Origin: Fimbriosthenelais zetlandica
Taxonomy: Eukaryota
Length of the DNA stretch: 64,000 nt
Assembly: GCA_977030845.1 (NCBI GenBank)
Contig: OZ365114.1
Span: 26,412,001-26,476,000, forward strand
Direction of reading: 5' to 3'
Shown: positions 1-56,909 of the stretch, piece by piece
Layout of the letters: every line of letters starts with the position of its first letter
Numbering within the stretch: the first letter of the stretch is position 1
The notes under the pieces: model-generated
The model's input: the letters and a program-made list of their open reading frames with translations, nothing else
Database searches by the model: none
Told to the model about the DNA's origin: nothing
Program-made: the position numbers and the translations under genes

Positions 1-560
1 ACAAAGGTTGTGCCACCTCCAATATGAACCATATAGAAATAAGAGTGACTCAGCAGAAAATACACCCATACTATGACCACAACCTACTGGATCTTTTCGG
101 AACCCCTTTTTGCATGGAAACCCTAATTAGAAACTGTCCAGTCGGGATCTATTTTTTATTGAATTCCCCGCCGGATGTTTCCTTGTAGAGGTTTGTTTCT
201 TTATGGTACCTTGTCAGGTAATGTTTACTAGGGAATCTTATAGCTATATCTTTGATGATTACCGCGCGTTCCTACCCCATAGGTTCACTCCTTGGATAGA
301 TCAGATCTATAGAATACTGTCTCGGGATTATATTACAAGGAGAAGGGTTCCCATCCTGTGGCTAGAGTAGGATAAGCCCCACCAACACCCTCCAGCCCCA
401 TCCGACCATCCAATTAACCCTTCCCCAATGTCACCTCCCTCTAGGCATCTTGATATGGATCTTTGCCAGTGCCTTAAGGCATCCTTACATTATGTGGGTC
501 CGGATGGCAACCTAAGGCATCAACTTCCACAAAAGAATTTCAGGCAGTTTTCTCTTGGAG
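1..560 (-). mobile_element. Decayed Helitron/Helentron Rep remnant (truncated by window start)
   Basis: Manual minus-strand translation gives RVSMQKGVPKRSSRLW (~77-125), resembling Rep motif 2 (RVEFQxRGSPHxHxLLW). It is preceded by LRHWQRS...GCWWGL (~380-490), resembling the motif-1 region. Stops and frameshifts are present. Confidence 0.4.
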
Positions 561-1556
561 AATAACACATCTAGTCTTGAGTATGTAGTGTTCTATATGT
601 TCCCTTCAACAGATGTGATCTCAGATGTAATACGTGTTCCTCCTTTTAGGTCGAACAACTACTGGGACAAGATGAGAAAACTACTAAGACAAGCTAAAAA
701 TAATAATAAGAAAAGCTGAAATACTACTGAGAAATACCTACTTTAGCACCTGGTCTATTAAAAAATGACCTTAATTGTTATTTAAAAGTCATAAACCATT
801 GATTAATAATGTAATAAAAAAACATGTTTGCAAGATTGATGAACCGTCTGAGAAGTTTCTTTTCTGAAGTCGTCCAGCAAGTGTTAAAACAGTCCAGTGG
901 AGGTGTTCCTCCATAGTGTGCCGGGAGGAGGATATCTATGAGTGTGTTCATTAATCTTTGACCTGCACACTAATGATTCTCCAGCCAGCCGATCGTTATC
1001 ATAGTCCATATAGCCCCTACCTCATGCTCCTGGACAAAGCTATAGCATGCAGCTCCCCCACTAGATCCCCATCTCCAGGCAGGATACAAGCCGTCAGACC
1101 ATATATCCTATATCCTGCTTGTAAATCCCCCCCCCCCCCCCCACCCTCCACCTCATGAAACCCGCACACACCATGTTTGGATGTGTTAATTCTAATTTGG
1201 CGGTGAGAGTCAGAAGTTCCGGTTCCTATGAAAGATGACAATGAAAGATTTTTAAAAGTTCCCAATACAAGCCTTCCTGAAACCTTTTATTTAAACTGCT
1301 ACTAATATAGGCCTAAACCATACAATCTAAAAGGGAAAGTTCAAAGAAAGTCTCTCAACTAACAAAAGAACTCAAATTAACCTTAAAGGTAATCCCAACC
1401 TGAACCTAAAGTTTCAAAACATATCTTTTACTCAATTAGCTTTCTCTCGGCCCCTTTAAGTGTTTTTGTCATCTAGACTGGGGGAATATTTCGGTGGGGA
1501 AAAAAGAGCGGGAATGGTGGATTTGAGTGACAGGTGCCAGCGTGGGAAGAGGGGAG

Positions 1557-1721
1557 GCATCCTGGATACGCGTCGTCTAGCCTTAGCAACGCTGGCGACG
1601 TAACGTCGTGTCAAGTGGTAGCGGCGGAGGACCGTGGGAAAGATCGCTGGCTGGCGGCGACGCATCCTGGATACGCGTCGTCAACCTTAGCAACGCTAGC
1701 GACGTAACGTCATCTCAAGTG
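1557..1721. repeat. CpG-rich ~60-bp direct repeat (2 copies, 105-bp period) with RFX-like half sites
   Basis: gcatcctggatacgcgtcgtc(t)a(g/a)ccttagcaacgct(g/a)gcgacgtaacgtc(g/a)t(g/c)tcaagtg at 1557-1617 and 1662-1721. Each copy contains CCTTAGCAAC and GACGTAACGTC. Confidence 0.9.
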
Positions 1722-2599
1722 CTTTTCCGCCAGATGTTACAATTGGATGTAATTAAAAGGCATTGGGACCTGTCAAAGTGATATGTCAACTTTGATTTAT
1801 GGCTGTTAAACTTTGCCCGAATATGGGCCATCATGCACCTCATGACCCTGTGACTGGGTCTCTAGGGGAAAGAAGTTTGCTCTATAGATCTAGGCCCGAC
1901 AATACTAAGTTAAATAAGTTTCTCAACTTATTTATTTTGAAAAATATACAGAATTCAGGGGGGAAATGGTGCCTATATAAATATACCCGTTATTTGGGCC
2001 ACTATGTTTTTAACAATGCAGAGGTTTTGATACTCTTTCCCAACTTGATTGTTAACCCTGGACATGATGAGGTTACAGGAGCCTAGTTGTAATTTAGGGT
2101 AGGCCATTTAGACCTAATCTCGAGGCGTTTACATAGGGTTGTATATTTGTTATGAAAATATGATGGCTTTTCTCAAAACAAACACGTTTTTACGTGATTG
2201 CAATGCTGTTCAGTATCAGTTTTGAATAGGGTTGGGTCTAGACCAGGGGTCCTAACTATAGCATTTTGATGTTCTAAACCCCTCCTGAACCCCTCCTACC
2301 CCCAACCGACTTTCTGCGGTATTGGACAAGTATGAGGGACATATGTCCTGACTGAGATTTACAGCGGCCCTTTATTTTGCCATTTACATGGCTTTCAATG
2401 CCTATCTCCCTCCTCAAAGCTCCACAGTTTCTGAAGGACATTGCCAATCCTTGGCCATTACAATCTAACCCGTACATGTAAAGATACCAATGGCAGAATG
2501 GCAGGGAATCGATTGAAAACATGATTGGACTCACTATCCCTCCTCCATCTCCTCCATCTTCCCCTCCTTCAGCCCCCTCTTCACCCCCAGCTTCTTCCT

Positions 2600-3750
2600 C
2601 CCCTTCTCCACCTCCTCTTCAGACAGTCTGTCTTTGCTATTTGCTTTACAACGTACATACACATATTCTGGATTTCCTATATCCAAGCCTCTGTCAGTGT
2701 AGGCCAATTATTTCATTTTCTAACAATGTTGTGCCACTCGGAGCAGCTCTTTCTATTGGCCCTTCGTTCAATAGCTCCAGTCAGATACATGCTTATCGCC
2801 GGAGACTATTTTCCTCACACTACCCGCTCCCTATTGATCCTGCTCCTCAACTGCTCTCCCCCGCTTTAGAGAGCGCCTCGCGAGCTATTTATAGAACAGT
2901 TCCGTGTCTTTGGCAAGCTGCAAGGAATGAGGCGATTGGAGCAAAAGTTTCATCTGTGCATTTGTCAGCTTCGCCTTAAGTCTACATGAACCCTGACCCA
3001 AAGGAGGTCAACTTTATGAGTGGCTCAGAGCAAGACCAAAACTGCGCGGAAACCAGCAGAGAAAGGAGTTTTTTAACAGCGGCGGCAAAGGAACGGGATG
3101 CGGAGAAGGAATCGATGCATCTTTTAATAGATTGATGATAATTATGAGTTTCCTCTGGTTAGCCAGATGAAGGCTGGAAGAAGGGAATCCATCTAATAAG
3201 GGCTTACAATCTCACTGACGGTGGTTTGACTGATATACTTTTTAAGCATATCTTAGCATATCTTTGATTTAGCAAAATGTTCCATCAAGGAAAAGTTTAG
3301 AAAGGTTACTGCTGACCTTTCCTATATTTTGTCCATGACGTCCAAATGTTTATCCTTCATAAATAATAAAAGGCGTACTTCCAGAACAATCTAGCCATAA
3401 TGTATGATGGCTCATACTTTACATCTGGGATCTGGCATCTTAAAGTCAGCGAGGCAGTCATTTTACCGCGCATCTTCACTCCTGAGACCGCCTGGAGTAG
3501 GGGGTAGTAAGAGGGTACCACAGTAACAGTCTGGTGATAGGAAAAAGCAGGAGGGGGAGGACATATTGATGTACTTCTCCTGCTCCTCCTCCTGCCTCAG
3601 GCAGTATACGGGAGGAGAAGTCATAGATCTGGCCATGCTGGAGGAAAGGGGGTCTAGATTAGCCAGTGTAAAGCCCCTCTCCTCCTGCCATCAGGCTGCC
3701 CCCTTTTATGAGCATATAGTCAGCATTTCCCCTTCTACGCTAGCGCACTG
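2600..3750 (-). mobile_element. Decayed CR1-type LINE, APE endonuclease region
   Basis: Minus-strand motifs in the correct order: AGGGAGEVHQYV (GGGVAIYV-like), LADFKMPDPRC at 3421-3453 (GDFNxPDIxW-like), HLDVM (LDLV-like). Confidence 0.55.
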
Positions 3751-3899
3751 ATAGAGTCAATAAAAACACATTCTGGAATACTATACCAATATTTCCTAGG
3801 CCTACCACACACCCAGTCATTTTCTACTTATCAAATGGCATGATATGATGATGCTATCAGGGGATGGAAGAAATAAATCAACTATAAATACTAAATCCA

Positions 3900-4310
3900 G
3901 TTTGGAGTAGACCTGTATAGTTAAACGAAAGCAATCAGATTTATATTACGATAAATCAGACAGAGACAATATTTCTGAATTGCAATAATGATGATTTTAA
4001 ACAAAAATGAAGACTTCCCACCGAAGCCAGAATCTAAGCTGTCAATGCAGTAAAATATCTTGCATGAAATAAATCCCATCTATGGACGATAAGGTCCTCT
4101 TTGTATCCAAAGTGACATGCTTTGTACATAATCATGGAAGGACATGATTTAATTGAACTGACATCCATGATTATCCACGGACAATTATTGAAGAAAATCA
4201 TCCTTTCGATGTTGACATGTGTATAATTATGGCAAATCTATAAGAATACCATTGTTGTGCTGTGTATATCCTTGCAAATCCTTTGATGTCTGAAGATAAC
4301 GAATCCTTAA
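3900..4310 (-). mobile_element. Decayed LINE reverse transcriptase fragment
   Basis: Minus strand GF...HSTTMVFL (4241-4264; GFRxxHSTxxAL-like), followed by IMDVSSIKS (LDLSKAFD-like). Confidence 0.45.
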
Positions 4311-5086
4311 TTGTTTTTCCTTTATCTCGGTCCGTTTGAGATGATATGGGCATATATGTTTGTGTCTGTTTTCGATTGCAGCATTTTCGATCGCAGGACG
4401 TCCAGAGGACGCTTACTGGATGAGGGCGGTTTTTTTTGGCGTTTGAAACACACGTTGATATCGTTACAAATTAGGAATGGGCCTAATGAGCAGTATAATA
4501 GATACTTATAATATTATAAGGAAAGAGGAATATGTGAAGACTTTTACCTGGGAGTGTTCCTGGTGCCTTGATTTAGGCCATTGAAGCCTGTGTCATGGAG
4601 GCAGCCCAATGCCACGAGTTCCATCCAACACCAACCTGAAACAAAAACGAAGTACACACATTAAATAAATTAAATTCAATTTATATCACATATTTTTAAA
4701 GTTATTTTTTATTGAAAGTGAACAGCTACTTCCAGAGTCTTTTCAGTTTTCTCATTTATACATTTTCTCGATGGAATTGTACGTTTCCCGCTGTGATCAA
4801 AACAAGTATACTAATACAAGTCTCCGAATACTGGAGATAAAATAATCTGAATTCCCAGTTCGTTTACAGGAGAGATGAGATTTCTATGGCTGTGAAAGCA
4901 AAGTAAGAGTCGCCCTTTATGTGATATCCGACACTGAACAGTATATAGTCTGCCCCTGGATAGACAATAGATGAGGGCATTGCATTGCAATTAATCACAA
5001 GAGGATAAAGCTGTATAAAAACATTATTCAACTCTATAATATAATGGGTTGTTGAGGTAAAGATATTTGGTGTTTATTCAGTTGAG

Positions 5087-5118
5087 ATGATCATAAACCT
5101 GAATGATCATAAACCTGA
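5087..5118. repeat. Perfect 16-bp tandem duplication
   Basis: atgatcataaacctga x2. Confidence 0.9.
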
Positions 5119-6649
5119 TGATGATGAACCCATTACGTGACCGGGTCGGGAGTGTGGAGTTTTTTTCCTCCTGGCTCAATACACTGAGTTCACATTCCTT
5201 GCCCACCTGATCATCTCCAGGCAACAATGCTCTCTCCAGGGAACCGTTCTGTATATATGACACTTTTTAGCACTAAAAGGAAGAGCCCAAGCACTGCATA
5301 TCACAAGCCAAATATCCAGGTGATTTACTTTCTTCAGCATGACACAAAACCCATATTGATTTTAGGTACTACCCTCAAAGATGCTTAGGGGAAAACCATT
5401 AGAATACCAAAGGGCCTGGATTTTTTTATTAAATAAATTATTTGGTAAGGAAAATGGATGAACTGAATATAATTTATTAACACAAGAGTCTGTGGAATTA
5501 AAGTATTCTATCCACAAAGGAAGGTGGAATGAAAAAATGGGTCGGACAAAAAATCCAGCCCCCTAATGCCTTTTCGGTGTTAGAACAAAGATGTGACATT
5601 TTTAAGGAGAGTATTTGAAGGAATATAGGTGGTTGGGTATTTGAATGGACAATGCTGAGTTGGAGCATGGTAGCTGACGGTATAGTGTGAAGCCAGGAGT
5701 CCCTGAAATACTCCAGATAAGACCTGAATCACTGGTGTGTATACAGCAGCTGGCATGGGGGTTACCAGTGTCCTTCTACTAATACTTCACTCTACCCCCG
5801 CCACCTCCATAAACTTCAGGCTAAGGATTACAAACATATACCCCATATATATCAATGTCTATTCTGATATTTAACATTAGTTTCCATGGATGCTTCTGGA
5901 ATACAGTCAAAACTAATTCAGACAAAATACAGCTGTATGTTCTTCATAATTTGAGCATTGCACTAAATGCGTCAATGTTTATTGCCTATTATATAAGACT
6001 ATTAAGCTATAACACGAAATATAGACAGCCTTATTGTGAGTAGTGCATGGAATCTAAACTTTAATCAAGGATACCCCTGCTGTAACCTCTATAGTTCTAT
6101 GGGGGGACTGCTTTAAATGCTGTGAAGAGGAAGTGGTATGTGCCTAGTCAGGACCCATGACAAGACTCTTGTGGTCGGGCTGTCGTTGCACATATTGCTC
6201 ATCTCTTAATAGAATAATGCATCATTGATATCAATCCTGGCACTCAATTTCCACGCCTGAAGCGAGGTAAGTACACGTTGACCCTAGCTCTCTGATGCTT
6301 GTTTGGCCTTTGCTAGTTGCTATGCTACACGTCCGTCTCCCTGGAGATAGCAGCTCTGACCTGCTCGCCATGGCAATGCTGACCCCGGCTGACCCCACTG
6401 ACAACCTTTACTAGCCCCTCCCTCCGTGTGGCTGTCCACTGTCCAAGATTACACTGGAGGTGTTAGACCTGGAGACTGGAGGACTTGCCATCTAGTTTAA
6501 AACGTATTGGCTATAACCATTTATGATATATCTTAAACAATATTGCTCGCAATTCCATTCTTAATTAGACGCTGTATAAACTTCAGATCTCATAAAATGG
6601 AAAATAGTTTGAGTTTCAAACAGTGGTATTTGATTTGTAGCTTTCAGTG

Positions 6650-9340
6650 ACTATTCGATCTTGGCAATCAAGTTGCTGCGTGGGCAAACTTACATTGGAG
6701 AGGCGGGGACAATGTCAGGATTGTTCTGAATTATTTTATTACAGAATTCAATTCAAATTAAAGTGGCTCGAAAAGTTATCTGAAATCGAAAAGGTTAATA
6801 GAAGTGCCACCTTCATAACACCACAAGATCTGATTCTCCAAACAAATGCCATTCAATGAAAAGTCTGAACTGGAGGAAAGATCAATGGAAAGAGGATTTG
6901 CCATTCCCGAATTAGAAACTAAAGATTTCATCCAAACTCTTCTTCTCCTTGAGCGAATGACAATCATTTGGTTGGTAACACATTGCCATTAACACAATGG
7001 ACTTGAAGTCATTAAAGTTTAGGAGCTCTTCTCTCCAACCCGAGCCACTCTCTGGTGTTTTTCACCAATTGCCTTTGAATGTTACCGGTCGAAACAGGAA
7101 AAACAGGTACAACAATAAGGAGGGATGATGAAGGAGGCCGACAAGGGTAAACAGGGCATTAGGTTTATGAAAATAGATCTGACTTTATTGGGGAGTCTGT
7201 TGGTGATGAGGATGTTCAGAAATGCTCGGAGGCTGGGAGGGCAAATAAGTATTAAAAGCCCAAACGAATCGCTCCATCCTACAATGAATTGGTTGGCTAT
7301 ATTTATTAGGATTCAATTCAATCTGACTTCAAGACTTTCCCAATGATTCTTTGCAAGGCGTTCAAAGCTGTCGATATAAAATGTGAACTAAAGTGTATGA
7401 AGGATTCAATGGAGGTAGAGCAGACCAGACTAATATTATCTCGTGGATTCAGATTGATAATGTCCCAATGATGTTTTTGTTTTCGTTGGTCTTTGGTCAA
7501 CAATCCTTACAACAGCAATGATCTAGGTCATACACTAAATGTACTGTAGGTTCAATACACAAGGACTTGTAAACAACATTTTACTTGTGAATTATTCATT
7601 AATATTTTGTATTCAAAGACTTGAAAAGCTACATGGACTTTTGATCTTGCTAATCACTTTGAAATCATTGACATTCCATTGCAGCAGTCCAGATTCACAG
7701 GTATTTCAAAACAAAACCGAAAGTTCCACTGCATGTACCGGAAGTTAGATTTGAATATATAGGTCAGGCGAACCTACCTGGTCCACCAATGGGAAATTAG
7801 GCTCAGAGCTTTATGGAAAGAAACACAATAATCCCCTACAGCACTAGCTTCATCTCCCAGGGGTCTAGCCTATCACTATCAACCTTCCCAAGACCTACTT
7901 TAAATTCCCAAAGGGAAACTTGACACTTCCAGTTCCATGTTTTCCACTCAAACCTAATTTAATTTGTGACATAGATTTTATTGGTTTCGGGTCTGCCGCA
8001 GCATCTTAGACCAACTTTAGGGCTGGTAGTTTCTTGATGGCCTATTACGTCCCCACTTGGATCAAATTACAATCCTACAATCATTATGTGCTGGTGCTTG
8101 AAGCAGCTTAATTTTCCATGAAGTTTCTCTCACCATTTTCTAAGTACAAAAATAGTTTTGGAAATTATTGAATATTCTCTTCTGCCGCTCATCTCGCTCC
8201 TCTTGCACCTGATTTTGTACCTCAGGCTCCAGCTGCTGCCTCCAACCATAGAGTCTTTTTGCCTGCCCATCAACTACCAGTTTACCCTTCATCCCCTTCC
8301 CTATCCCAGCCCTTGGCTCTTCCTCTCTCTCTACTCTTCACCGTCAGACACACAACATCACAATTCCCACAAATGGGATTTCAACAGTGGCTGGAGCCAG
8401 GAATTCCCACTTGCTGAGTGGTTCCGGTAAAAAAAATACTTCATTGTCTTTTGATAATGCACTTTCGCTGTAATCCACGCCGGAGAACAGATTGTCTCGC
8501 CAAGTGAGCTGCGATTCCTAACCTCATTAGATAATCTCTCTAGACGATTATCTTCAGGCGAACGATACAGATTCCAGACTGATATTACTGCTTTCATGAT
8601 GGCAAGAATTGGTCTGAAATATTGGATATACAGAAAGGGATTTCTCATATACGCTCTGATAGGAGCAGGTGCACAATGAAATAGAATATCAAACAGCCAT
8701 GACCGCTGTTATGAAACTTTTCAATTAAAGTGGGACAGACATTGTAAATCGACTTATTCCAAGTTCACTATTGAATCAAAACAAGCAACAAACTGGATTT
8801 GATTGCCTATAATGATGAATGAAACGTGCGCGAATGCTAACCAAATCCGATTCCACAAGATTGTTCAAAATACCTATAGGGTATATACATAAGTTTCTAA
8901 AATAGCACAGCACTATTATAGGGACAGGAAAAGAGCACCGGACAATCATTGAGCTTTCTCAGCATTATTTTTTCAGGTTGTAATACGCCTACATCCCCAT
9001 CCATACGAGAACCCCCTCATCGCATATTTTCAAATAGGAAGAAGTATGTCGTTTGCCTTTGAAGTGTGGAGGATCATTGTTGAACCGTGCTTTGCTTCTC
9101 CACGGGGCCAAAAGCTCAAATCCCGGAGTCATCTTTACAGCCGCCATACTTTGCCACGGGAGAATTATAGCTGGCTCGGCAGGGAAGACCCTTCAAAAGA
9201 AGATTGCCAATTCTCCACTCCATGGTAACACCTTGGAGGTGGTGTCCCTCTTCTTCCTGTGTCGGTAGAGAGGACCCGGAGGAGTATGTTTACAATGGCT
9301 TTGTCACATCCTGTCTGAGGAACTACAAAGCTAAGGCTTT
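6650..9340 (+). mobile_element. Decayed DIRS1-type tyrosine-recombinase retrotransposon (RT-RNase H-C-terminal domain-YR, colinear)
   Basis: Ordered degenerate motifs: VGKLTL..YYRIQF..LQTNAIQ (VGGRL..GYxIxF..LLxKGAI), TMDLKSLKF 6994-7020 (DLKDAYF), GIRFMKIDLTLLG ~7154-7192 (GIRLxIYxDD), LGGQISIK..SLHPT, TWSTN, YSLLPLIS..PYPSPWL (YAFPPFxLI..PxWPxQPW; ORF 8158), RFLTSL ~8513 and RKGF (YR N-terminal part). Confidence 0.65.
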
Positions 9341-11450
9341 ACCACAAGTCCTTACTCCGCTGCTCCTCTTATATTCTCAACGCTCCTGTCTTCAGGCTTG
9401 AATCTCTTATAAGGCTGTTGTTCACCAGACAAGAGTCTCTTATAGACCTCATCGCACGTTCGCCCAGCTCCTTTGATATAATCTATTAAGTTTGCTTTAT
9501 CAATAACAGATATAAAAAGACGGATGACCCATGGGGAGTATGATGCAAGAGAGACGGCAGGTTTAACCTTGACCATCCCAGTTACTCCCCTCCGCTGCTC
9601 ATCTCTTTATTCTTTCCTGGCTGGCTTCTGGATCAACAACAACAGTTTGATCATTAATGGGGAGGTGCACTTAACAATAAAAACCCATGATCCATTATAG
9701 GGCATACCAGCCTCATAAACCATCCCAAGGCTGAGCCCGAAATAACCGCCGCTTCATTGAAATTCATCCAATTGAGGTCATGCCTCTAGCTCACTTGAAT
9801 CTCAATTATTGTTAGATTATTCAAGAGCGAATCAGGTTTGTCACCAATGTCTAAAGTGTGTCTAAATTACAATAAAATATTAGATAAATAGGAAAATATT
9901 ACAGGGGGTGCTTTCAGCTCACGTTAAATGAGACATGGGGAAATCTAAAGACATGGTAGCAGGTGAAGCCAAGCACATTCCCTCCAGGTTAAAAATGGAC
10001 AGGGAACACATAGCTCTGTCACTCTCACTCACTACCAGGAGCTGGGCAGAAAGATCTGAAGTCACACAAGAGTTGGGAATAATTAATGGACACTTAAATT
10101 AGGGCTGGATCGTGCCTTTGTCAGCGACAAGTTTTTGCCGAGGGCTTGGCGTGCATCGGAGAAGACTGGCTTATCTATTATTCAAAAGGCACCGATGTTC
10201 CTGTCGCGGGACCAACTTGAGCTCTGGCACCCACCATGCTATAGTATAGGCGATTCCTCCCCGCCAGAATGAAGCAATTCTGTCCAGCTTGTGTTTTTGT
10301 TGCCAGGACCGAGATTGGAAGATTGGGAATCAGGGAAAGTGGTAAATGGTTCTCACGCCTCTTTTGCCAATCATGCTTTCTCATGAGACTTTAAATTACA
10401 TGGGCCAATTGCGACATCGAATATATAAGGATCTTGTGTCTTCACAATTCCAACTTGTGTCCATACTCACTTTTAAATTAAATATTTCATAGTAGGTGTA
10501 AACGATATTCCCCCAAGGAGACAAGGACATGGATGGCTAGAATGTGTTACAAGAACATGCTAATTCCCATGACTGCCAATGTCATTGTTAATGACTTTCA
10601 GTTCGTCTTGCTGTTAATGGAAACATTGGTTTAAGTAACTAACAAACATTTTCGGAAAAGGGCGTTGAGAGAAGAATAATATAATCATTAGGATTCCCTG
10701 ACAGAATTTCCAACATATACTTCTCGGGCAGCCTTGGAAGGAAGAAATGAGCTGCAATTTGTAGCATTTGTCTTACAGTGTACTGAGCTAAAAAGTACAT
10801 TTTACTGTAGCTGGGGGTGGATATGGAGGTGCTCTTAGTGTGGCACTTGTAGTTACTTTTACCATGTATGGGGTGGATTGACTGTGGCGCTAGTAGTAAT
10901 GGTTCTCCTCACAGCGAGGGCCCAGGTGGCAGAGTAGCGTGACTAGCATACGTTCCTAGTCTTTATGATGTTGTTACTGGAGAAGACTGGTCTGGGAAAG
11001 GGGGGAGAGATAGGGGGAGAGGGGGTTGAGGGGAAAGATGTAGAGGGAGAAACCATCATCTCCTTCCCACTGATGTAAGCACGGGAGAGTCAGAACAAAA
11101 TAACTGTCACCATTCTGACAGTGAATTGCTGAATGCTGTCAAACGTGGAGGCATGGGGAAGGGAGTGTAGCTGTCACAGTGACATAAGTGAATTAAAGAA
11201 AGCCTGACAGACGTGTAAATGCTGTCAGACTCAGATCTGACATCAAACTTTAAGTTAAAATCTTTCAAACACAGGCCCGTAGCCAGGCCTTCCGATTCTG
11301 GCAACTTATCATTTTCTTGCAGCAAATGATCCACTTGCAGTTGATGGTCTTGTAGACAAGCTCCATGTGCAAGAATCACTGCAGGAATCACCAGGCAATG
11401 ATCCATGGTAGGTAACCAAATAGTGTACCAAGTCATTATAAATATCCACT
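9340..11450 (-). mobile_element. Decayed non-LTR retrotransposon (EN-RT-C-terminus)
   Basis: ORF 11107-11436 LCLKDFNLKFD (GDFNxHVD-like); ORF 10178-10384 NHLPLSLIPNL (NYRPISLLPNL-like); ORF 9352-9576 GAGRTCDEVYKRLLSGE..KR (RTE-like post-RT RxLxGExxxxKR). All are on the minus strand in the correct order. Confidence 0.55.
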
Positions 11451-16699: not shown

Positions 16700-18720
16700 G
16701 AATTACTGCCATCGCTGGAATGGTTTCCAAAATTCACCTCCCTTTCGCCCAACCATGGCGACTGTGTGAAATTTGCTGGCGAGTGGTGTGTGCTTGAGTA
16801 AGTGGGGGAGAGAACTGCATTGGGGATATCACTTCATAATGGATTTGGATGTGGGGGAAAGGATCTGGGGGATTAATAATAAGAGGTGTGTGGGAAGGGC
16901 ACTTGGTCTCCAATAAGCTTAAGATGATTGCATTCTATGGACTAGGTTCCATTCATTCTGGAGGGTCACATAGAAAGACCCCATCCAGTGCAGGGTTAAA
17001 TTCCCGCCTCCCAACAGTAGACTCGTTGGCCTTTGAGAATATGTACTGTTCGTAATAGATCAATTCCACACACATTCTGATGTGTCCTATATTACATTTT
17101 TTCCCACCATTTGCATTTCCATTATTGCTATTTGTCTTCACTTGTGGCGGCGGTTTGGTTGTGGTTTTCCAGTTAATCATCACTGCATTTCTACCATTAA
17201 GTTCATTTCAGTACATTTCTATAAATTCTATCAGGTTCGCTCTGAAAATAATATGCGCGCCGCTAGCCCATAGAGATGTCATTGGCAAATGGATCGCACC
17301 TTTATTATGAAACAGATTTACCTGGCATGTTAATCCATCTAAGATTAGCGCGGCCAGTCACCCATCTGTCTTGGGGAGTGACCGTTGATTTACCTTCTCA
17401 GATTTCCCCTCTGCTATATACTGTAAGCGGTAGTAGTATATCAAAATGGGATGATTCTCCAGGATTGCCCTTTTAACTCTTTACCATTACAATGCCTATT
17501 CCCAAAATCACTGAACAGCTATTGTGTCTAAACAGCTTTTCTTAGTATAATATTGTCAACAAAAATCTCCAAAGGGGTATTTACTGAATGGGAGCATTCA
17601 TGCGTGGTGGCATGCGAGCATGGATTATTTATTTGATGTGGGATGATTTATAATAGCAGGTATAGCGTAATTCCCTCCCCTCTCCTACTCCATCATACCC
17701 AACCAACATTATTTCATCCCACCCGGCAGACGACAAAGTAGATCAAATACGACCTTGACAATGTCAGACGAAAAGGTCAGCCTATGCTAAAATGATACCA
17801 TTCCTTCGCCCCTTAATTTTTGATGAGTCATTCATCTTTTACCGACAGCGGAAGTGGACCACGCGAGAAGCACGGACATGGATCACGTGGTGCGAGAGTT
17901 ACAGTGGGAGAGTTGTATTTACATGGATCGATTTCATTGATAGAAAGGCACTTCACGCCTTCATAGGCTGTGCGAGATTCTACGCGAGTGACCGATGCCA
18001 GCCAATAGCGGGTTATTTAGCCAAGGGGGACCTATGCTCGAAGATTGATTTGCCTCAACCGAGGCAGGAAAAAGGTACGCAGGACTAGCAAGCTTGACAG
18101 GAGGGCTGTGGAGCATGCCTTCCTCCTACATACACTATTCATGTTACTTCCAGACATTTTTAACAGATATCTCATCTTCCCCATCTCTTATCAGTTCAGT
18201 GATTAAAACCAGGGGTATCCTCCACTATAGGAATATAGCATAGAAAGAACTTGGTAAAGAATATACGACATATAAAAGGACGAATACTTTCAATATAGCA
18301 TAGCGAATCTCCATAGAGTTCTTAAAGGTCCAACTATATGAGAGGGAAAGATGATTTTATCAGATGATTTTTTTTGCATGGGATTACTGTTGGGGGTATA
18401 AATTCCTTCTTCATCCGCGATAATGTGGTATAGGAAGGGGGCCTATAGTGAATCTGATCAGTACAGAAAGGGAATTCATATAGAGCGAGTAGCACCAATC
18501 TAAACATTGCTTCTCAAACAGACGTTGCTTGGCCTTTAACTTCCGGTGGCGCCGCCTGCCGGTCGTTGGCCCGGTATTGACCTAGTTTGGTGGATTGGAA
18601 AAAAGGATCAGGTCGAAGATCCTTCATTCTAGCTGCGACCTGGAAACTGTATCGACTCCATGACAGATAAATAAAGGAAGCAAATTCCAATCATCGAAAT
18701 GAGAATGATTTTTCAGCTCT
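16700..18720 (+). mobile_element. Decayed Ngaro-type (DIRS order) retrotransposon: CCCH ORF1, RT, RNase H, tyrosine recombinase
   Basis: CHRWN..CEIC 16707-16780 (CCCH finger); GLGSIHSGG..MYCS ~16940-17050 (RT N-terminal part); WITWCESYSGRVVF and TDAS 17991-18002 (RNase H); SDQYRKG 18453-18473 (SKTDQFRKG) and SFILAAT 18620-18640 (HSFRIGAAT) of the YR. Confidence 0.75.
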
Positions 18721-24660: not shown

Positions 24661-26564
24661 CTTTCCATCTCCCAATGTTATTTTATGATGAAAATAAAAC
24701 TCCTCCCCCATCTCCGGCTATACGTAAGTTTCGGCTCTTGTATTGATTCGAGTATTGAAGTCTACTCGCTCCTCGAAATCACCCACCATTTTTGTTATCT
24801 CTGACCTAGCGGGATCCAAACAAACTAGCTATTTTAGGAAGGTACCAATATGAAAGATGTTGGGGGATGCTTTAAAGGGAGTTATTTAAGCGATTTCAGT
24901 TCTGAATCAGGTCACTCCGGCCAGTGACATCAATATTTGGGCTTCACGCGCCATAAGAAAGCACATACGTCAGATAAGACCCTGTGATTATTCTTCAAGA
25001 TTTGATCGCTGTAGGCGAATATTTATCCCAATCAATTGGCGAATGAATTAGACATGACTCATCACTATTGTCAGAGTCATTTGTCGGGAAATAATCACTA
25101 GGGTAAATGAGAGGAGATTTGAAAGCACTCTTAACTCATCTTTGATATTGATTAAAATATCAATTGTGGCCTTTTAGAGATCATTTCAAGCTAAAGACTC
25201 CTGGGATTTCTGGATCATCACAATCCCTCAATCCTCCCCCGTCCTCCCGCGCATGCTCTTTGCGTCTCTTTTTCTAAGTAGGACTTGTCAGATTGACCCA
25301 TCATTCCATCAGTGAGCATGCGCAATAGATGATGACATAATGCGATTTCTAACCGTCAGATGGGGTTGGCGACATCCTCGTCATCTTAGTTGGGACGTGC
25401 ATAAAACACGCTAATGACGTCACACGATTCCGGACGACATTTTGGGGAGACTGACGTGGAATGACATCTAGCGGAAGATGTTTGAAGAACACGAAAGGGG
25501 GATACATGTTATTTTGGTGTGCGGGGCCCGAAGAAAAAAACAAGGGTAATTGCAGTTAAATTCTAATTTTAGAATCAAAGACAACTAGGAGTCCTTTTCT
25601 TATTCTTAATGACGACTGATATGCATATCTTAAAACATAACTCACTGCCTTCAACCAATGCGACTAAGGTTCAATTTGACTCCATTAAGATCTATGTCAA
25701 GCAACTAGATCATCAGCTAGGCTTTCCCAACCATTAATGATCAATTCTCAATTTCTCTCTGGCCTTGAGTGATTGGGGAGCCACGGCTTCCTGGGACCCT
25801 GGAGCAGTAGGAAACATTCTTCAGTAAGAATCATCTATCTGGTTCCCGTGAGACTAGTGCCTCAGGTCCCACCTTCCGCATTCCAGCCCTGAGGACCTTC
25901 ACACATGGGTTAGTACTCCCTGAGGGCCTGGACCTTCAGCATTAAACCAAGGTTCACAGCCCTCATGAGGTCCCTTTATATCACACTTATTTCTGATATT
26001 ATAAAGAGTTGAGTGACTCTTCATGCTGAGGGCGTGAACAGCGCATCAATGTGAGGTAATCAAGACGGCAATACCTTTCCCATTTGGTATGACTGAGAAT
26101 TTAAATTCATGTGTATTAAGGTTGAGTAGGCAAGACAATTTCCAATTCATAAGAAAACAAATATCAAGATTTCCGTGGAGGCGGGAGATCCCTGGGACTG
26201 AATGTAATCAGGGGAATGGCCTAAAAAGGCGTAATTAGAAAGGATATCTTAGAAGGGATCCGCACTGCACTACTGACTTATTTTCTCTGGGAAGAAGAAG
26301 CAAATCCTAGCCATAAGTGATTTGTGAATGGGCGATTAAACAGGTCATCATTTCATCACGCTGCTGTGACTGATATAGAAGAGCTATAAGTTGTCGTGTC
26401 TTGACGTGCACGGCTGATAATTCCAGCCTGAGTGGGTGGTTATGAGATATGAAAAGAAACCATGAGTGAATCACCCAAAGACTTGGCAGAGAGCAGAGAG
26501 AGGAGAGGATGAGGTTGGAAAGAGAGACGGGAAGCCCTGAGCCGTCCAAGTCACACAAAATCAC

Positions 26565-30660: not shown

Positions 30661-31935
30661 CATCATGCACCCTCAAATAGGATCAGCCATTCTATACCCA
30701 AGACATGAATTTAGACGTGTATCAGTCCGATGCCTATCACTGCAAAGAAAGCCACTAGTCAGTAGTACTGTCCAACTTAAATTCTCTTATCCCCAAATAA
30801 ATATCTGTATATGCCCCAAAAGAACTACACAAAGGAATTTCCAAATTGTTCTTGATTTCATGAAAAATACAAGCTTATTTTGAGCGATTCTGCAACAATG
30901 ACCATATAAATTTGGCATTGGCATGGAAATGCTATTATAGGTGGATGCATTTCCTTTGTGATTTAGTAGAGCATTGAGCAGGCAGATTGGGGGTAGTAGT
31001 GAGTTAGAGGCGGTCTAGATGGCGCTGACAGTAGATATCCTCTTATGATGAGGTTACTGCGCATGCGTAACCCAGGATGAGGTGGACAGGTCAGTGAGGT
31101 CGCATGTGTGCATGATCTACAGTTGAAATAGCTTGCAATGTCCATAAAGAAACAGTAATCACCTCCCCTCCCTATCTATCACATCACAACCTGGGTTAGA
31201 GGACATGAATGGTAATGAATCTACGATCTCCCTTCATATAACAAGCTGCTAAGCTAATGAATATTTTCAATGCATGGATAATTATTTAAAGTAGAAAGAA
31301 TCACTTGAAGAGTGGAGCATAACCTATGTGGTTATTGTATACAGGGTTTTGCACCTCGTCAATGGCGAGGGTTTGCGAGGGTCGGCGAGAATTAATAGCA
31401 AAGAGCCATTCAAACGACACCATTGCATATTATGCAATGCATTGTATATTGCATTAAATAATGATTCTATGTAATGCAATCGTTTGACGAGGGGCTTTAT
31501 GCCATAAATATTATAGGGAATATTGTAAATGATTTGAATAATCTTTTGTTAAAAGACAATCACTATTTTTTGTTTTGATTTTCACAGGGAAATTGTAGAA
31601 CATCCACAGTACATGTGTGAGCCTCCCTACCCCTACCCATCCCCCACCCCACCCCCCACCCACCAGCCTCCCCGCCCCACCTCCTCATGCCCCACCCTAT
31701 TACCTCCAACACCCTGTCTCCCTATTCAACAACATGTAAGCCACAAATCTGACACCATCTTCAAAGCACTGCCTCTCATCCCATGGCTTCCAGGCCTCCT
31801 CCCTCCAGCCCTGCTGTCCCTCCCCTTTCAAGGCAGGCTGGTGGGGAGGGGGCGGGGGGTGGAGGGGGGGGGGGGAGGGGGTTGGTGGGTTTGGTTCGTC
31901 TTCCTAAGATTTTAAAATGAAATCTCTTCAATTTA

Positions 31936-40400: not shown

Positions 40401-42379
40401 TCTGCCGACAGGAGGCGTGGCCTTTGTGAGCAGGGAAGACACCACTTTGGGGGATATACCTAACGCAATAGAGCCCTAATCTCTAACGGATCGGCAAGAA
40501 ACGATCACATATGCACATGGGTGCTTTACTTCCCACAGGCTAGTAAGGAGATGGGAGGAGGTGGGGCTGAGGAGGGAGGAGAGGGGATGGGAGGGACTGG
40601 GAGTCCTTGTGATTTGGATCAACATGGGACTGCCATCTCCACTTGGGGTCTTGCCATCTCCTTTATTCTCACATTTCTTTTCATCCATCTTACACTTATC
40701 ATTTTTTCCTTTTTTGTTTTTCCCAGACAACTCATCTACAAGTTTGATAGACATTTGTCTCGCGATACCTATAGGATGCAACCTTTTCGTTTGTGACCAT
40801 ATTATGATTAATAATAAACCTCGCAGAGTCAAGATGGATTCATTCTGGATTGTTTTTTTCTCAGTGTTTTGTTTTGTGGGATTGTCTCAATCAACAACAA
40901 ACTGATATTAAATTTCTTTCGAGCAATTCGTTTCTTTCACAGTTCTCTTAGTGCAATAGGAGTTTTGCTGTAAAAGGCCACAAACAACGAACAGGCATAT
41001 TGGGTAATTAATATCGTCTGTTTTACTCAGTTACAGTAACCTAGTTCCGTCTATAATCTCTGTGTATCTGGAAGGAGCTTTGGAATAATTCGAGCCTTCG
41101 TTGTTTTTACATTAAGTCCAGGATCGCATGCGCCTGCTCAAGTGGACATATGCCTTGTTTGACATTGCCCCATTTGATGGGCAGCCCGCCTAATCAATTT
41201 CTATTTACCCCCGGATATGAAGGCCCTTGTCGGGGCCTGGTAAGGGCATCTGGATGACTGGATGTGGCCCTTAGAAGGTCCTCAAAAGGGACCAAACCTT
41301 GGACAAGCTGACCCTTTGTCCAGGCTCCCAGCACGAGGGCTACAGATGCTACAGTCTGCCTACAAATATGGGAACATGGGTTGAGAATCGGAGGGTAGAT
41401 ATTGCTGCCCATGCATACAGCAGACGGATAATGTTATTGTGTTGATATTTACACTGATCAATGGATAAAGTGCTACGACATTCACTTATTTAGACATCTA
41501 TTTCAGTGGCAATATTTTTCAGCAGATTTCGCCAATTCAGATAAAGCTACATAAATGAGCATTTCATGATGGACAAGAACTGAGATTTGTGGTTTAATCT
41601 GTAAGAGTCTACAATCAGGATCTCTGATTCTATATCCGGTCTGTGGTGGACATAAAAGAACAGAAAGCAAACAGCAGAAGAAACCAGAGTCCGAAAAGCC
41701 TATGCACCAAGCAGTCAATGACCAAATTCCAGAATTAAACTGCCCCAGAGGGGTTCCAAGCACCAAGGTAGATAGTAAAGCGCAGGGTGGCAGAAGGAAT
41801 GCTGAAGCGCGGAAATAGTCTGAGTTATGAGCCCACAGACGGGGCCCGCCATTTTGTTGGTGCTATTAATCACACTGCCGACGCCTCGGGGATCGCCGAC
41901 GCCATTTCACCTGTCGATATCGCCGTAATTTTAGTCGCGAGAAGACATCAAGTCCTTTTGGTTCTTTTCTTGGCTCAGTTTATCGAGGCAGATGATAGCG
42001 TTTCATAAATATGCACTTAGGCTTAGGACCCTGGTAACAAAGACATGTGCGTGACTATAATTGGTTTATCAGGGGAGGCTGAAAGGGTTTTACTACCTCG
42101 GGCAAGATGAGGGGGGAGGAGGATGGTGGAAAGAAGAAATCAGTGGTGAATGGGACATTTCTTCATATGGCTTCGTCTGTTTGCCATCCACTACTGCATG
42201 AAGCCATCAAATGGCTCGCAGTTGAAAGTGGCTGCGTTAAATTCAAAGTGTTTCTTCACAGTAACAATAGTCTTAAGCATGTCAGCAGGCATCTGAATCT
42301 TCCTTTGTTCGGATTATGTACGTATTTCAATACAAAAAGTCCATACATCTGCCTTTCATTATTAAATTTGTTAAAAGGG

Positions 42380-52250: not shown

Positions 52251-53736
52251 ATAAGGGTTGGCATCGGATTTCTTACAATTTGAAATCTATTTTTAAGGTC
52301 CTTACAAATGCTGACCTAGCTGCCATCTGGTATACAGACATAAGGGTGATGATCACCTTTTGGGGACATATCCCATGAGAATGACTTTTGGGTTGAGCAG
52401 GTGAATAACTGGCCCTCAGGTGGGAAGGAACGCTGGTCCCTGAGGTATCCCCTGACTAAACTGCGTCACCATGCAGCTATATACACCTGAGAATTGGTGC
52501 ACCACGGTGAATGAAGCACCTGCCCCCTGTTAACAGGTCAGAAAACAGCTGCACCAGCAAGGCCCTCAGGTCTCTTTATGGACTTGTCAGTGGTATAAAT
52601 ACACACCCTCGAGGACCTTAGAATGGATAGGAATCCATCAGGAATGACCTTAGGAAACTGCTTTTTCACGAAGAAATATTGTTCATTTTTTTCCCTTTTT
52701 TACTCGGAATATAAGAGTTTATGTATATTTCCTTTATCTTAATTTCTTTAATTTTTTTCCCACGACTTGGTCTGAATTTGTTTATATTCTAAACATTATT
52801 ACATTACATGGCACGCGTCAAAATTAGGGCAGTGTGCCACAAAATGGCCCCCATATATCATGAAATATGCAGTCGTATTTAATTGACTGCAAATGAGTTG
52901 AGCTTTGTAAAGGTAGTATAGCCTGGGCCTGGGGGTATAGAAGTACACAGAGGATGTGGTAATGTGATGGATGTGATTTCTGACACCTATATTAGTCAGC
53001 CACCTTTCATCTATACCACACAGGTGTAATGAGGCAGACTGGACTACTGGCCCACACAGCCGCTACACAACAACATATCTAAATATTACATACATCATTC
53101 CTATACCCTACACACTCCACTATTTATCATCTTAGTCAACACATATTTTAGGGATTTTATTCCCAGGGATTAAATATACCCTGCAAATTGGGAAATCGAC
53201 CATTATATTAATATATAATACCAATTACCCTGGGTACTTTTAGTCTTTTTCAGATGCTTTTGGCCTAAAACTGTACCATTTGACAGGCAATTTCAGGTCG
53301 GAAAATATACATAATGTTAAGATATGGGGCCTTCAGTTGATACCCTTTTAATATGTCATAGGAGTTTGACCAAAATTTGTCAGAAAAATGACATTTAGTT
53401 AAGCTGTAAGGCAATGTGAATGAAAGGTCGGCCATGTGAACATTGATGTGGACCTACATTAGTTCACTCCGTTATTGAGTCTGTGGTAAGGTTTATGTCA
53501 TGTTGATCTATCAATCATTGTCATTGATTGACAGGTAGGACTGTTGAGGCGGGGCTTGCATCTCAATGTAAGGTAGACGGTGATTTATCCCTCATTAGTC
53601 AGTGATTTATCATGATGTATGGTGATAAGTTCCCCACCTGACTCCTCAACCTCTCTATACTGAGCTCTGTCAGACCTACAGCATGCCCAACCTTACTTTA
53701 CCCTAACACACCATAATCCATCTACTCATTCATTTA

Positions 53737-54580
53737 GGGTAGGGTGGGGCAAAACGCCCAGGTGGGGTAAAACGCCCACCACCAAAATATCAGTGATGCT
53801 CTATTTTTTCCCGTGACGTCAGTCATCAATAAGTGCTTCAATCCTAAAGGGTTTCTCCCCATGTGACACTGGTGGCACAATCTAATAACTTTAGTTTCTA
53901 TAGTCGATTTACCAATTTTGCCCTAATTTTTGTAAAAAATACACTGTGGTTATGTGGCTGCCAAATCCAGACAACTAGGTAGACTTCCAATAACTCTATA
54001 TGTGCTGGTAACTAAGGATGTTAGTTAGTCATTTACTGGGTTGTTGGTGGGCTATTGTTTAACAAGAGAGTTCAGGGAACTATAGTTACATGAACCTACA
54101 TTGGGGCAAAACGCCTACCCTGGTTCGGGGCAAAACGCCCATGTGGGCATTTTGCCCCTCGAAGAAATACATTGGGGCGTTTTGCCCCACACCAGGCTGG
54201 GCGTTTTGCCCCATCCATATTCGAACTAGTGGGGGGCAAAACGCCCACTAGTTCGGGGCAAAACGCCCACTAGGTTCGGGGCAAAACGCCCACCAGTTGG
54301 GGCAAAACGCCCAGTGGGCATTTTGCCCCCAGGCACCTGGGCGTTTTGCCCCCAAGGCACCTGGGCGTTTTGCCCCACATAGGGGGCAAAACGCCCTTTT
54401 CAGAAAAAAAATTATTTTCGAAATTTTAGAAAGAATATTAATGGAGGACTCATGGTTTAAAGGATATTGGTAGCACTAATAATACTTCATAATTTGTGAT
54501 TAGGATTGTTCTTCAAATTAAAAAAAATCAAGAGATACACCACATTCTGCTTAGGGTGGGCGTTTTGCCCCACCCTACCC
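53737..54580. mobile_element. Young non-autonomous DNA transposon (MITE, 844 bp; Tc1/mariner-pogo-like by TA TSD)
   Basis: Perfect 24-bp TIRs GGGTAGGGTGGGGCAAAACGCCCA (53737-53760) and its reverse complement (54557-54580). TA on both sides (53735-53736, 54581-54582). No ORF. 13 internal copies of GGGGCAAAA(C/T)GCC(C) at 54103-54396. Confidence 0.92.
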
Positions 54581-54635
54581 TACTCATTCATTTACTCATT
54601 CATTCATTCATTCATTCATTCATTCAATCATTCAT
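54581..54635. repeat. (TCAT)n microsatellite (MITE target site)
   Basis: tactcattcatt units continue on both sides of the MITE (also 53723-53736). Confidence 0.9.
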
Positions 54636-54660
54636 ATATTAACCCATACAACTAATAAGA

Positions 54661-54844
54661 AGGACTGGTTTCAGGCAGGTCCGAGCGGCCGTAGCCTATC
54701 GTGAGAGCATAGAACTAGAATATTATAGTTCTATGTTGTGACGGTAGGTCGCGCAAGCATCTGCCGCCGGAAGCCCAAGGCAGATCCTTGCACGACCAAC
54801 CTAAGCATGATACGAAGCCGCTGGACCTTACCGAAGCCTGTCCT
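54661..54844. other. Unidentified Y-shaped fold-back element (possible structured ncRNA or TE/viral terminal hairpin)
   Basis: Imperfect complementarity 54661-54703 with 54806-54844 encloses two hairpins: 54708-54717/54726-54735 (perfect 10 bp) and 54743-54765/54779-54801. Confidence 0.6.
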
Positions 54845-54848
54845 GTAT

Positions 54849-54944
54849 TTATGTCACCTCCAACCCACAAATATTACAATAATAAACGATAGTTTTACCT
54901 GTGTTTAGCGTGAAAACCTTCGCATTGTTTGTATCGGGCGCCAT
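54849..54944 (-). other. Candidate first coding exon (MAPDTNNAKVFTLNT, donor CAG|GTAAAA at 54899/54898) or 31-aa mini-ORF
   Basis: Context aaacaaaagcatcATGGCG. Unspliced it reads MAPDTNNAKVFTLNTGKTIVYYCNICGLEVT*. CpG-rich surroundings. No downstream exon identified. Confidence 0.3.
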
Positions 54945-55585
54945 GATGCTTTTGTTTCTCACCTCCTCGAGGGAGAGTTCCACACGCGCACACAACAACG
55001 GGTAACATGTCTAACGGTCTGTCTGTGGACGTAAATAAGAAGAAAGGTGGATGACCGAGCCCATAACAAACTTTACCCTTATATTAGGGTGCTAAGGACA
55101 TAGCCTGGAACATTCCTAAATGATTTGAATACTTCTCTGATAGTGTTTTGACTGACACAGTACAGAAACAAGATCAACAACATTAGAATCATCGGACCTT
55201 TTCTCGGGACATTAGCAGACTGTCACACTGTCACCAACACATTGACAACATGTAAACATTGCCATCCCTTCGGATATCAGGGTTTGAGGACAACTCACTT
55301 TGGATCGATGGATGGATTACAATTGTAAGTGTTAAATCTCCTTTCATTTGGTTTCACCAGGTTTCACTCATGCCCTACCTCTTTGACTAAATCATTCATT
55401 CACTAACACATTCACTCATTTCATGTTATCCCTTGTATTAGTTGTCCATGAAAATAACATGGGTACCTGGTATCCCGGAACTGGGACATATTAGTTCCAC
55501 TATTCACCGCTCAGTCAGGGCGTGCTGGTTTTGCCATAGCTTCCGGTCCTCTGACACATAATGTCATACATTCAAAATGGCAGAC

Positions 55586-55645
55586 GAGTGAATGGGAAGG
55601 GAAACCCACAGGCTAAAGCTCTTGGGTTTCCCATCCCATTCTCTC
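55586..55645. other. 60-nt hairpin, 23-bp stem with 2 mismatches
   Basis: gagtgaatgggaagggaaaccca / tgggtttcccatcccattctctc, with a 14-nt loop. Confidence 0.7.
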
Positions 55646-55716
55646 TCTCAGGGAATAATATAATAGCTAGGCCTACCAACAATACGACTTCTATGTGAGT
55701 TATATCACTACCTCCC

Positions 55717-55774
55717 TGACTCACTCACTCATTCACTCATACATTCCCTCATTCACTCACTCATTCCCTCACTC
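55717..55774. repeat. Degenerate (TCAC/TCAT)n microsatellite
   Basis: Seen directly. Confidence 0.8.
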
Positions 55775-56909
55775 TTTGTTACCAATAACATGTAGCAATC
55801 ACAACACAAAACGCAGCAAATTTCATTTAAGAGGAGAAAATTGGATGAAGCAGTCCAAGATCCCAGCGATCAATATTTAATAATTTCAATTTAAACAAAG
55901 GAAAGCAGGTGATTGGAAATGCCAAATCCACTTCCCATTAGTAGTATCAATCTCCGAGCTGGCCTCTTCTGGATCTGAGGCCGATGATATATGCACATGA
56001 GTTCCTCCGAGTTTCTCCTGACATGCCTAAATCTGTCAGTGAGTCAGCTAGAGGGTAAAGCGAGATGACCCAGATTAACTAGAATAAAACATGTAGGTCT
56101 ATGAACAATCATAGATGTACAGTGTACACAATTATGGATGATCACGTTCTTGGCCCATGTTTTTTTGTTTTGTTTTCTTTTTAGTTAGAATTTTGATAGA
56201 GCCTGTTATGGGTGAATACCAGCTCACACTCTTGATTACACAAGTTTTTGGTGAGAGATTTCATATAAGTATACCATAATCATTTCCAAAACAATAAGTC
56301 ACATAGGCCCTACATGACTTTTCCGACAATCTCCTGATCCCGGTGTCCTCAATACAGGCTACTTTTCCTATTACTTCACTTTCTATGAACTCCAACAAGC
56401 ATCGAGGATTCATGGTAAAAGAACACTTATAATTGAGAACAAACATGTTTATACGTCAACGCTTCACGCCACACTATATTCATGTAGAGGGAGCTGGGGA
56501 GTGTTTACTGGTGAAAGGTTGAACAGGTGTGCAGGTACCACCCTCCTACAAGTCTCTTTTTATATTTTGAAGCCTCAAATAACTATGTTTGTGTGGCATT
56601 TTATAGGAAAATATGTCATAATTTGTAAAGTCATTTTCCTGTCTGTTGCTCTACTACTGAATGGGATGAGTAACTCTTCGTCCAATAATATAGAGGATAC
56701 ATCTTAAAGAGACAAAATCGAAATAAACACATCCCCAACACATAGTCTAACATATCATATTATCTACAGGATTAGACTAAATTCAAATTAATTCAGGACT
56801 AGGCTCAAGTTGACGAATACATATTTTTGTCACACAATTTGAATATCCATCCCCAATGGAAATCTGAATATAGGCCATGGTCATAATCAGTTTCATCTTC
56901 CAAAATAAA

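Follow-up and report, generated by a model that had tools for sequence, protein, structure and literature searches.

The locus

The window analysed here, a continuous stretch of 64,000 nt, is a gene-poor eukaryotic region with a mosaic distribution of CpG dinucleotides, in which 408 stop-free segments yielded no credible Pfam domain and almost no internal repeats were found (4 blastn pairs). At positions 54661-54844 of this window lies a palindromic segment of 184 nt that folds, on both strands, into a three-way junction of 68-69 bp, made up of an outer stem, an AT-rich hairpin (arm 1) and a GC-rich hairpin (arm 2). The fold adjoins a CpG-rich segment on one side and, across a short spacer, a tetranucleotide tract on the other; this tract is split by a non-coding TIR element, and the whole assembly is bracketed by an exact 10-nt direct repeat (Table 1).

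Table 1. Coordinates of the fold, its helices and the neighbouring features within the window.
Feature	Position	Strand	Details
Left direct repeat ACTTTACCCT, exact, 10 nt, candidate TSD	53695-53704		exact repeat, chance estimate 0.11
Remainder of the tract beyond the nested TIR element	53705-53734	-	about 13 nt TCAT-like, 17 nt non-repeat
Non-coding TIR element, 848 bp	53735-54582		perfect 26-bp TIRs; exact 10-bp TSD CTCATTCATT at 53725-53734 and 54583-54592
(TGAA)13 tract, (TCAT)n on the plus strand; putative retroposon tail	54584-54635	-	TRF period 4, 13 copies
Spacer between fold and tail, 25 nt	54636-54660	-	AATATA (54640 to 54635) abuts the first tail repeat
Whole three-way-junction fold	54661-54844		MFE fold, z about -9.6 on both strands
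Outer stem, 5' arm	54661-54695		pairs with 54805-54844, 31 bp, bulged
Arm 1, AT-rich hairpin	54697-54746		perfect 10-bp core 54708-54717 / 54726-54735, 8-nt loop
Arm 2, GC-rich hairpin	54747-54797		54747-54765 / 54779-54797, 13-nt loop 54766-54778
Single-stranded junction strand, arm 2 to outer stem	54798-54804		7 nt unpaired
Outer stem, 3' arm	54805-54844		pair list, arm alignment
Unique CpG-rich segment, 225 nt, upstream of the fold on the minus strand	54845-55069	-	holds candidate ATG 54947 and GT donor 54900/54899
Right direct repeat ACTTTACCCT, exact, 10 nt, candidate TSD	55070-55079		starts 13 nt after the block's last CpG

Several smaller features occur elsewhere in the window. CpG enrichment peaks in a patch with o/e values of up to 1.27, and this patch contains a direct repeat of 67 nt with 90% identity (1551-1617 and 1656-1721). 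Two low-complexity tracts, one C-rich (31630-31697) and the next G-rich (31840-31889), could pair with one another, and a small hairpin (55586-55645; 23-nt arms, 91% complementary, 14-nt spacer) is located between degenerate ACTCATTC-type tracts (55371-55429 and 55700-55782). The Rfam model mir-4436 matches weakly at 31794-31873 (E 0.076), far under the gathering score, and this match is probably compositional.

Architecture and stability of the fold

A sequence-only reading of this stretch had described a Y-shaped structure of three helices, and all three are present at essentially the coordinates that it gave. The MFE of the 184-nt segment is -97.3 kcal/mol on the plus strand and -97.4 kcal/mol on the minus strand, so that the two strands are equally stable, compared with mean values of -54 and -57 kcal/mol, respectively, for dinucleotide shuffles of the same segment (z -9.7 and -9.5). 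None of 200 shuffles reaches the native stability, which places the structure far beyond chance. The same three-way shape is obtained with DNA parameters (-48 kcal/mol, z -7.3), the helices have mean pair probabilities of 0.89-0.99 on either strand, and on the minus strand the fold persists as a separate domain when embedded in 487 nt of its context. A scan of folding strength across the window, with correction for GC content, places the neighbouring TIR element alone above the fold.

At the level of the individual helices, some of the boundaries differ from those first read by eye. The outer stem, initially taken to be ~40 bp long and to extend to 54703, is real, but its inner end is at 54695, giving 31 bp, and the bases on the 54703 side join arm 1 on the plus strand. 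The perfect 10-bp AT-rich hairpin at the core of arm 1 is found exactly as read, and the arm as a whole reaches 19 bp (54697-54746), with the extension formed on the plus strand only; described as a palindrome with no spacer, it has arms of 27 nt that are 81% complementary. For arm 2, the loop lies where it had been placed, but the outermost pairs of the helix proposed at 54743-54765 / 54779-54801 constitute an optional extension of 3 bp (54743-45 / 54799-801), which competes with the base of arm 1. Six bases (54743-54748) can therefore pair within either arm, and the junction may shift by a few pairs. It had also been noted that removal of the AT-rich hairpin would leave a single long rod, and inspection of the pairing agrees with this, with arm 1 on one side and the 7 unpaired nucleotides of 54798-54804 on the other interposed between the outer stem and arm 2.

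Searches for RNA families, relatives and proteins

Rfam gave no match at or above the gathering score in any part of the window. In the sensitive mode, applied to 54400-55100 and admitting E values up to 10, the best matches inside the fold are to plant miRNA models at chance level (E 2.3-5.5), and a sensitive scan of the whole window added nothing. ARAGORN detected no tRNA; a hammerhead core of the CUGAUGA or CUGA-GA type is absent from both strands of the fold, with GAAA occurring once, on the minus strand only; and there is no T4 run that could act as a Pol III terminator within the fold or the next 60 nt on either strand. The sequence-only reading, too, had matched the fold by eye to neither a tRNA nor 7SL nor a hammerhead ribozyme.

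Searches for relatives were similarly blank. There is no second copy of the fold within the 64-kb window (blastn with word size 7 or 9; nhmmer --max), nor of the adjoining segment 54845-55069. Relatives were absent from 2.9 million viral contigs (four scans with exact or degenerate DNA patterns or with peptide patterns, in which one match was confined to the pattern itself, L002), from metagenome contigs (two scans with DNA or peptide patterns) and from prokaryote genomes, where a single chance match of 20 nt (L001) did not extend beyond the pattern. A word-indexed search of a protein library with three translated frames that span the fold and the segment 5' of it returned no relative either. 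The sole match of an exhaustive phmmer search, P0001, was rejected as spurious, being the translation of a 207-bp satellite (L003) with no DNA similarity to the fold; the region concerned (1-10966 of a 1.0-Mb contig, ENA ERZ25074135) is a gene call on an array of about 53 satellite units, and it illustrates that the protein library contains ORFs called on eukaryotic repeats. Because the viral, metagenome, prokaryote and protein collections are not expected to hold the source eukaryote, these blanks say little about the copy number of the fold in its own genome. An exact look-up of six ORFs of the window in the contig index found none on record, and the full text of published papers contained no match to sequence strings of the fold and the neighbouring TIR element, nor any joint mention of 'MITE' and 'three-way junction'.

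The region is also without recognisable coding capacity. Pfam gave no credible domain for any of the stop-free segments, which numbered 121 for the window as a whole (at least 75 aa), 137 within 50.3-59.6 kb (at least 36 aa) and 150 for the minus strand within 28.9-50.3 kb. No gene for a replication protein, capsid protein, transposase or reverse transcriptase therefore adjoins the fold, and neither a reverse transcriptase nor an endonuclease domain was found in the window.

These results bear directly on the proposal that the segment is a terminus of the parvovirus or densovirus type, in which case it would be a solitary terminal hairpin left behind after integration of a viral genome and loss of its coding part. 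The shape is appropriate, as a Y-shaped palindrome of ~180 nt that forms on both strands and also as single-stranded DNA (z -7.3). However, no credible domain was found in segments of at least 75 aa across the 64 kb or of at least 36 aa within 50.3-59.6 kb, neither a second hairpin nor a related repeat is present in the window by blastn or nhmmer, and none of the 2.9 million viral contigs matches. In parvovirus termini, moreover, the side arms are usually much shorter than the 19-27 bp of the present fold, and the stem is less mismatched. With nothing but its shape to recommend it, and in company with neither viral genes nor a second hairpin nor a viral relative, a viral origin is barely credible.

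Differences between the paired arms

When the paired arms are compared with the reverse complement of their partners, they differ by 8 transitions, 8 transversions and 8 gap columns; in the outer stem, the alignment comprises 29 identities in 42 columns (69%), 6 substitutions and 7 gap columns. Three of the transitions are compatible with G-U pairing on the plus strand and five on the minus strand. The G-U-compatible changes that the sequence-only reading had emphasised do exist, to the number of 8, but they indicate no one transcribed strand and are equalled by the 8 transversions. Folded alone, arm 1 is much more stable on the plus strand (-29.9 versus -17.2 kcal/mol, a loss of 12.7 kcal/mol on the minus strand), whereas arm 2 is more stable on the minus strand (-34.4 kcal/mol on the plus strand versus -42.2 kcal/mol), where it acquires three extra G-U pairs and a closed tetraloop. 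As the strand preferences of the arms are opposed and the G-U-compatible transitions are split 3:5, there is no signature of an RNA made from one strand. The pattern of arm differences is that expected of drift in a DNA palindrome and is equally compatible with an RNA that has designed loops, and one sequence cannot separate the two. A common origin of the three helices by triplication was also considered, and no sequence relatedness among them was detected. As they are mutually unrelated, the fold is not a hairpin in three copies, nor is it obviously one MITE family nested within itself.

Such an arrangement may be read as a small non-autonomous class II element or its relic, of the MITE or foldback kind, occupying 54661-54844, with its arms as TIRs. 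The element would have moved as DNA, the arm differences would be neutral decay, and the CpGs would have been kept by an unmethylated patch. The segment is indeed palindromic, small and non-coding, with inverted-repeat termini whose outer arms pair over 31 bp; both strands fold equally, with the preferences of the arms cancelling one another; and the unbiased distribution of differences over transitions, transversions and gap columns (8 each) is as drift in a DNA palindrome would produce. The CpG-rich state exceeds the fold, so that youth of the element need not be assumed, and only 78 nt away stands a bona fide TIR element whose TSD is clean, which suggests that elements of this sort are active in the genome. 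Against this, no TSD of 2-10 nt is found for boundaries placed up to about 12 nt from either end of the fold, and there are no TIRs outside it. Furthermore, the fold consists of three independent, unrelated palindromes rather than one hairpin, its outer arms are 69% identical with gaps and yet the CpG o/e is 0.96, and no further copy was found in the window or in the metagenome contigs. On balance, we regard an origin as a MITE-like element as possible but rather unlikely.

The neighbouring TIR element splits the TCAT tract, stands 78 nt from the fold and is not part of it. Its 10-bp TSD and long subterminal repeats suggest a MITE of the Mutator-like or foldback type. The interior carries arrays of 18-24-nt units that contain GGGGCAAAACGCCC in both orientations, and at -131.6 kcal/mol per 200 nt the element folds more strongly than any other stretch of the window.

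The fold is single-copy in everything that was searched, has no TSD and shows no strand bias, all of which would also suit one-off local inverted duplications, generated by template switching during replication and endowed with neither mobility nor function. Three unrelated nested palindromes would, however, call for three independent events within 184 nt, and the window contains no comparable structure other than a real transposon, which makes this a distinctly improbable origin.

CpG content and the putative mini-exon

The CpG o/e is 0.96 in the 184-nt fold as compared with 0.49 in the window, and the segment had accordingly been described as CpG-rich and far less decayed than its surroundings. 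In fact, the CpG-rich block (54682-55057; 25 CpGs in 375 nt) ends 213 nt past the fold, with the next CpG at 55193, and the o/e is 1.03 over 54636-55069 and 1.10 for 54845-55069. As the enrichment runs past the fold to 55057, it is not special to the fold; the description is accurate for a block of ~400 nt but not for the fold alone, and about 25 other patches of the window have a CpG o/e above 0.85. CpG richness thus belongs to a unit of ~400 nt that includes the fold and provides no evidence for constraint on the fold itself. Examples of the CpG-rich patches are 1350-1950, 17600-18100, 25150-25700 and 41650-42150.

On the minus strand, the CpG-rich segment holds a putative mini-exon (54901-54947), in which an ATG whose context is good precedes CAG/GTAAAA by 47 nt, giving a possible first coding exon of 16 codons; the candidate donor is at 54900, close to the 54898 of the sequence-only reading, and the fold would be reached 57 nt into the putative intron. 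A weak TATA-like motif is present near 55079-55086 on the same strand. No exon was found downstream of the candidate donor on the minus strand, either by motif regexes or by Pfam over 28.9-50.3 kb. Assignment of the mini-exon as the start of an aldo-keto reductase was considered and dropped, as regexes for short motifs revealed no further exon; this negative is given no weight.

Taken together, the CpG-rich block and the mini-exon could be understood as a host locus, the block being the unmethylated, promoter-proximal island of a minus-strand transcript and the fold a locus-specific structured RNA in its first intron, where it might act as a small-RNA precursor, a protein-binding scaffold or a splicing regulator. 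Consistent with a host RNA are the exceptional stability and well-defined helices, the bulges and 1x1 loops, which are RNA-like, the CpG o/e of about 1 over 54682-55057, the ATG in reasonable context with its CAG/GTAAAA 47 nt on, and the three G-U pairs and closed tetraloop that arm 2 gains on the minus strand. However, there is nothing credible in Rfam and no T-run terminator on either strand, and the gene model is unsupported by any downstream exon or protein domain on the minus strand, either over 28.9-50.3 kb or near the fold. The strand evidence is contradictory, with arm 1 losing 12.7 kcal/mol on the very strand that would be transcribed, and the collections searched gave no homologues in which covariation could be sought. 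We therefore consider a host RNA unlikely. Unlikelier still is the proposal that the fold is no remnant of a transposon but a lineage-specific, independently folding three-way-junction RNA of a family outside Rfam, such as a small-RNA precursor or protein scaffold, within an unmethylated promoter-proximal intron; within that proposal, a solitary hairpin of a ssDNA replicon is less likely than the RNA.

Nothing shows that the fold is a functional RNA, and neither CpG richness, nor G-U-compatible changes, nor an intronic position supports selection on an RNA. Should conservation at this locus, accompanied by compensatory changes, be demonstrated, the fold would represent an unclassified structured RNA. 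The value of the present analysis is mostly negative in this respect: three of the arguments of the sequence-only reading lend selection on an RNA no support, and that for a virus terminus comes down to shape. The most probable view is that a small mobile element inserted here and that the fold is its structured portion, as opposed to a new functional RNA or the end of a virus.

A putative retroposon

Our preferred reading, which we hold tentatively and at less than even confidence, is that a small non-LTR retroposon, either non-autonomous or truncated at its 5' end, inserted on the minus strand over 53705-55069 and that the fold is a structured module in its interior; some of the probability falls to none of the readings considered here. 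In minus-strand order, the element would run from the unique segment of 225 nt through the 184-nt fold and the 25-nt spacer ending in AATATA to (TGAA)n, with ACTTTACCCT on both sides, and the 848-bp TIR element would have landed in its tail later. Of the possibilities raised by the sequence-only reading, the context favours an unclassified mobile element of which the fold is the end or another structured portion, given the tail, the AATATA hexamer, the nested TIR element and the 10-nt repeats, which lie at the edge of the CpG-rich block.

Several observations argue for this assignment. The (TCAT/TGAA)n tract at 54584-54635 is the only one of its kind in the window and is 25 nt from the fold, and on the minus strand it is immediately preceded by AATATA, which abuts the first repeat. 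Short retroposons that have no tRNA head and that carry terminal tandem repeats after variants of the poly(A) signal, AATATA among them, have been described, and LINEs that end in tandem repeats share this layout (PMC4758252). The fold forms an independent domain in the 487-nt minus-strand context. The two copies of ACTTTACCCT flank a stretch that holds the CpG-rich block and the fold together with the microsatellite and the TIR element: as the right copy is located 13 nt past the last CpG of that block (o/e 1.03 versus 0.49), the repeats enclose one compositionally distinct unit. The unrelatedness of the helices and the lack of both a fold-flanking TSD and outer TIRs disfavour a simple or nested MITE, and the lack of a nearby protein domain fits a non-autonomous or truncated copy. 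Within a retroposon, the putative mini-exon would lie inside the insertion and be incidental.

We infer that these parts, namely the fold, the tail, the hexamer and the CpG-rich segment between direct repeats, belong to one unit that moved through RNA and in which the fold has a protein-binding role. ORF2 proteins of LINEs of the stringent type must bind a 3' stem-loop beside the tail (PMC4176376). By analogy, the element would have been copied via RNA, and the Y-shaped domain beside its tail may have served as a handle, bound by the reverse transcriptase of a partner LINE ahead of target-primed reverse transcription. The bulges and mismatches would then have been inherited from a source copy and would not represent decay.

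A number of observations nevertheless weigh against the retroposon. No second copy was found in the window or in the viral, metagenome or protein collections. Microsatellites and AATATA are common in AT-rich DNA, and a shared 10-mer between segments of this kind is expected by chance in 11% of random placements in the window. The left copy of ACTTTACCCT is separated from the TCAT tract by 17 nt of non-repeat sequence, which is unusual for the tail of a retroposon. A Pol III head derived from tRNA, 5S or 7SL was not found (ARAGORN; Rfam over 54400-55100). Assignment to the minus strand receives no support from strand preference, as arm 1 folds far better on the plus strand and the G-U-compatible transitions number 3 (plus) and 5 (minus), and the 3' handles of known LINEs are single small stem-loops, not three-way junctions of 184 nt.

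Comparison with known systems

The fold has the three helices and closing stem of the three-way junctions represented in Rfam (hammerhead, 5S rRNA and Y/vault-type small RNAs), but it differs from them in matching no covariance model (best E 2.3, plant miRNA) and in having neither a catalytic core nor a Pol III terminator. With the Y- or T-shaped terminal hairpins of the Parvoviridae it has in common the Y shape, the size class and the ability of single-stranded DNA to fold on either strand; unlike them, it is accompanied by no adjacent viral genes, second terminus or viral relative, and it has long side arms and an imperfect stem. The likeness to MITEs and foldback elements resides in its small, non-coding and palindromic nature, with both strands folding, and the TIR element with a 10-bp TSD is located 78 nt away. 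In contrast to these elements, however, the fold is without a TSD, has three branches instead of a single hairpin, and is composed of arms that are 69-81% identical.

The arrangement as a whole resembles two groups of retroposons in layout. Like the 'LP-SINEs' of molluscs (PMC4758252), the putative insertion has no Pol III head, a total length of ~0.5 kb, AATATA before a tandem repeat and flanking direct repeats; as the 'LP-SINE' families are recognised by their many copies and by a 5' end that derives from a LINE (PMC4758252), the likeness here is one of layout. The 3' tail stem-loops of LINEs and SINEs of the stringent type, as in eel UnaL2 and zebrafish ZfL2-1 and ZfL2-2 (PMC1636434, PMC4176376), share with the fold the placement of a stable structure just upstream of a terminal short tandem repeat, and in these LINEs the 3' structure is needed for recognition by the element's own ORF2 protein (PMC1636434, PMC4176376). 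Here too the likeness is one of layout, and the LINE stem-loops are single hairpins of a few tens of nucleotides, whereas the present fold is a three-way junction of 184 nt situated 25 nt from the tail. If the retroposon reading is correct, the fold, as the RNA handle of a retroposon with a tandem-repeat tail, would be unusual in its size and elaboration, which would be useful for the repeat annotation of this genome and of some interest for the choice of templates by LINEs.
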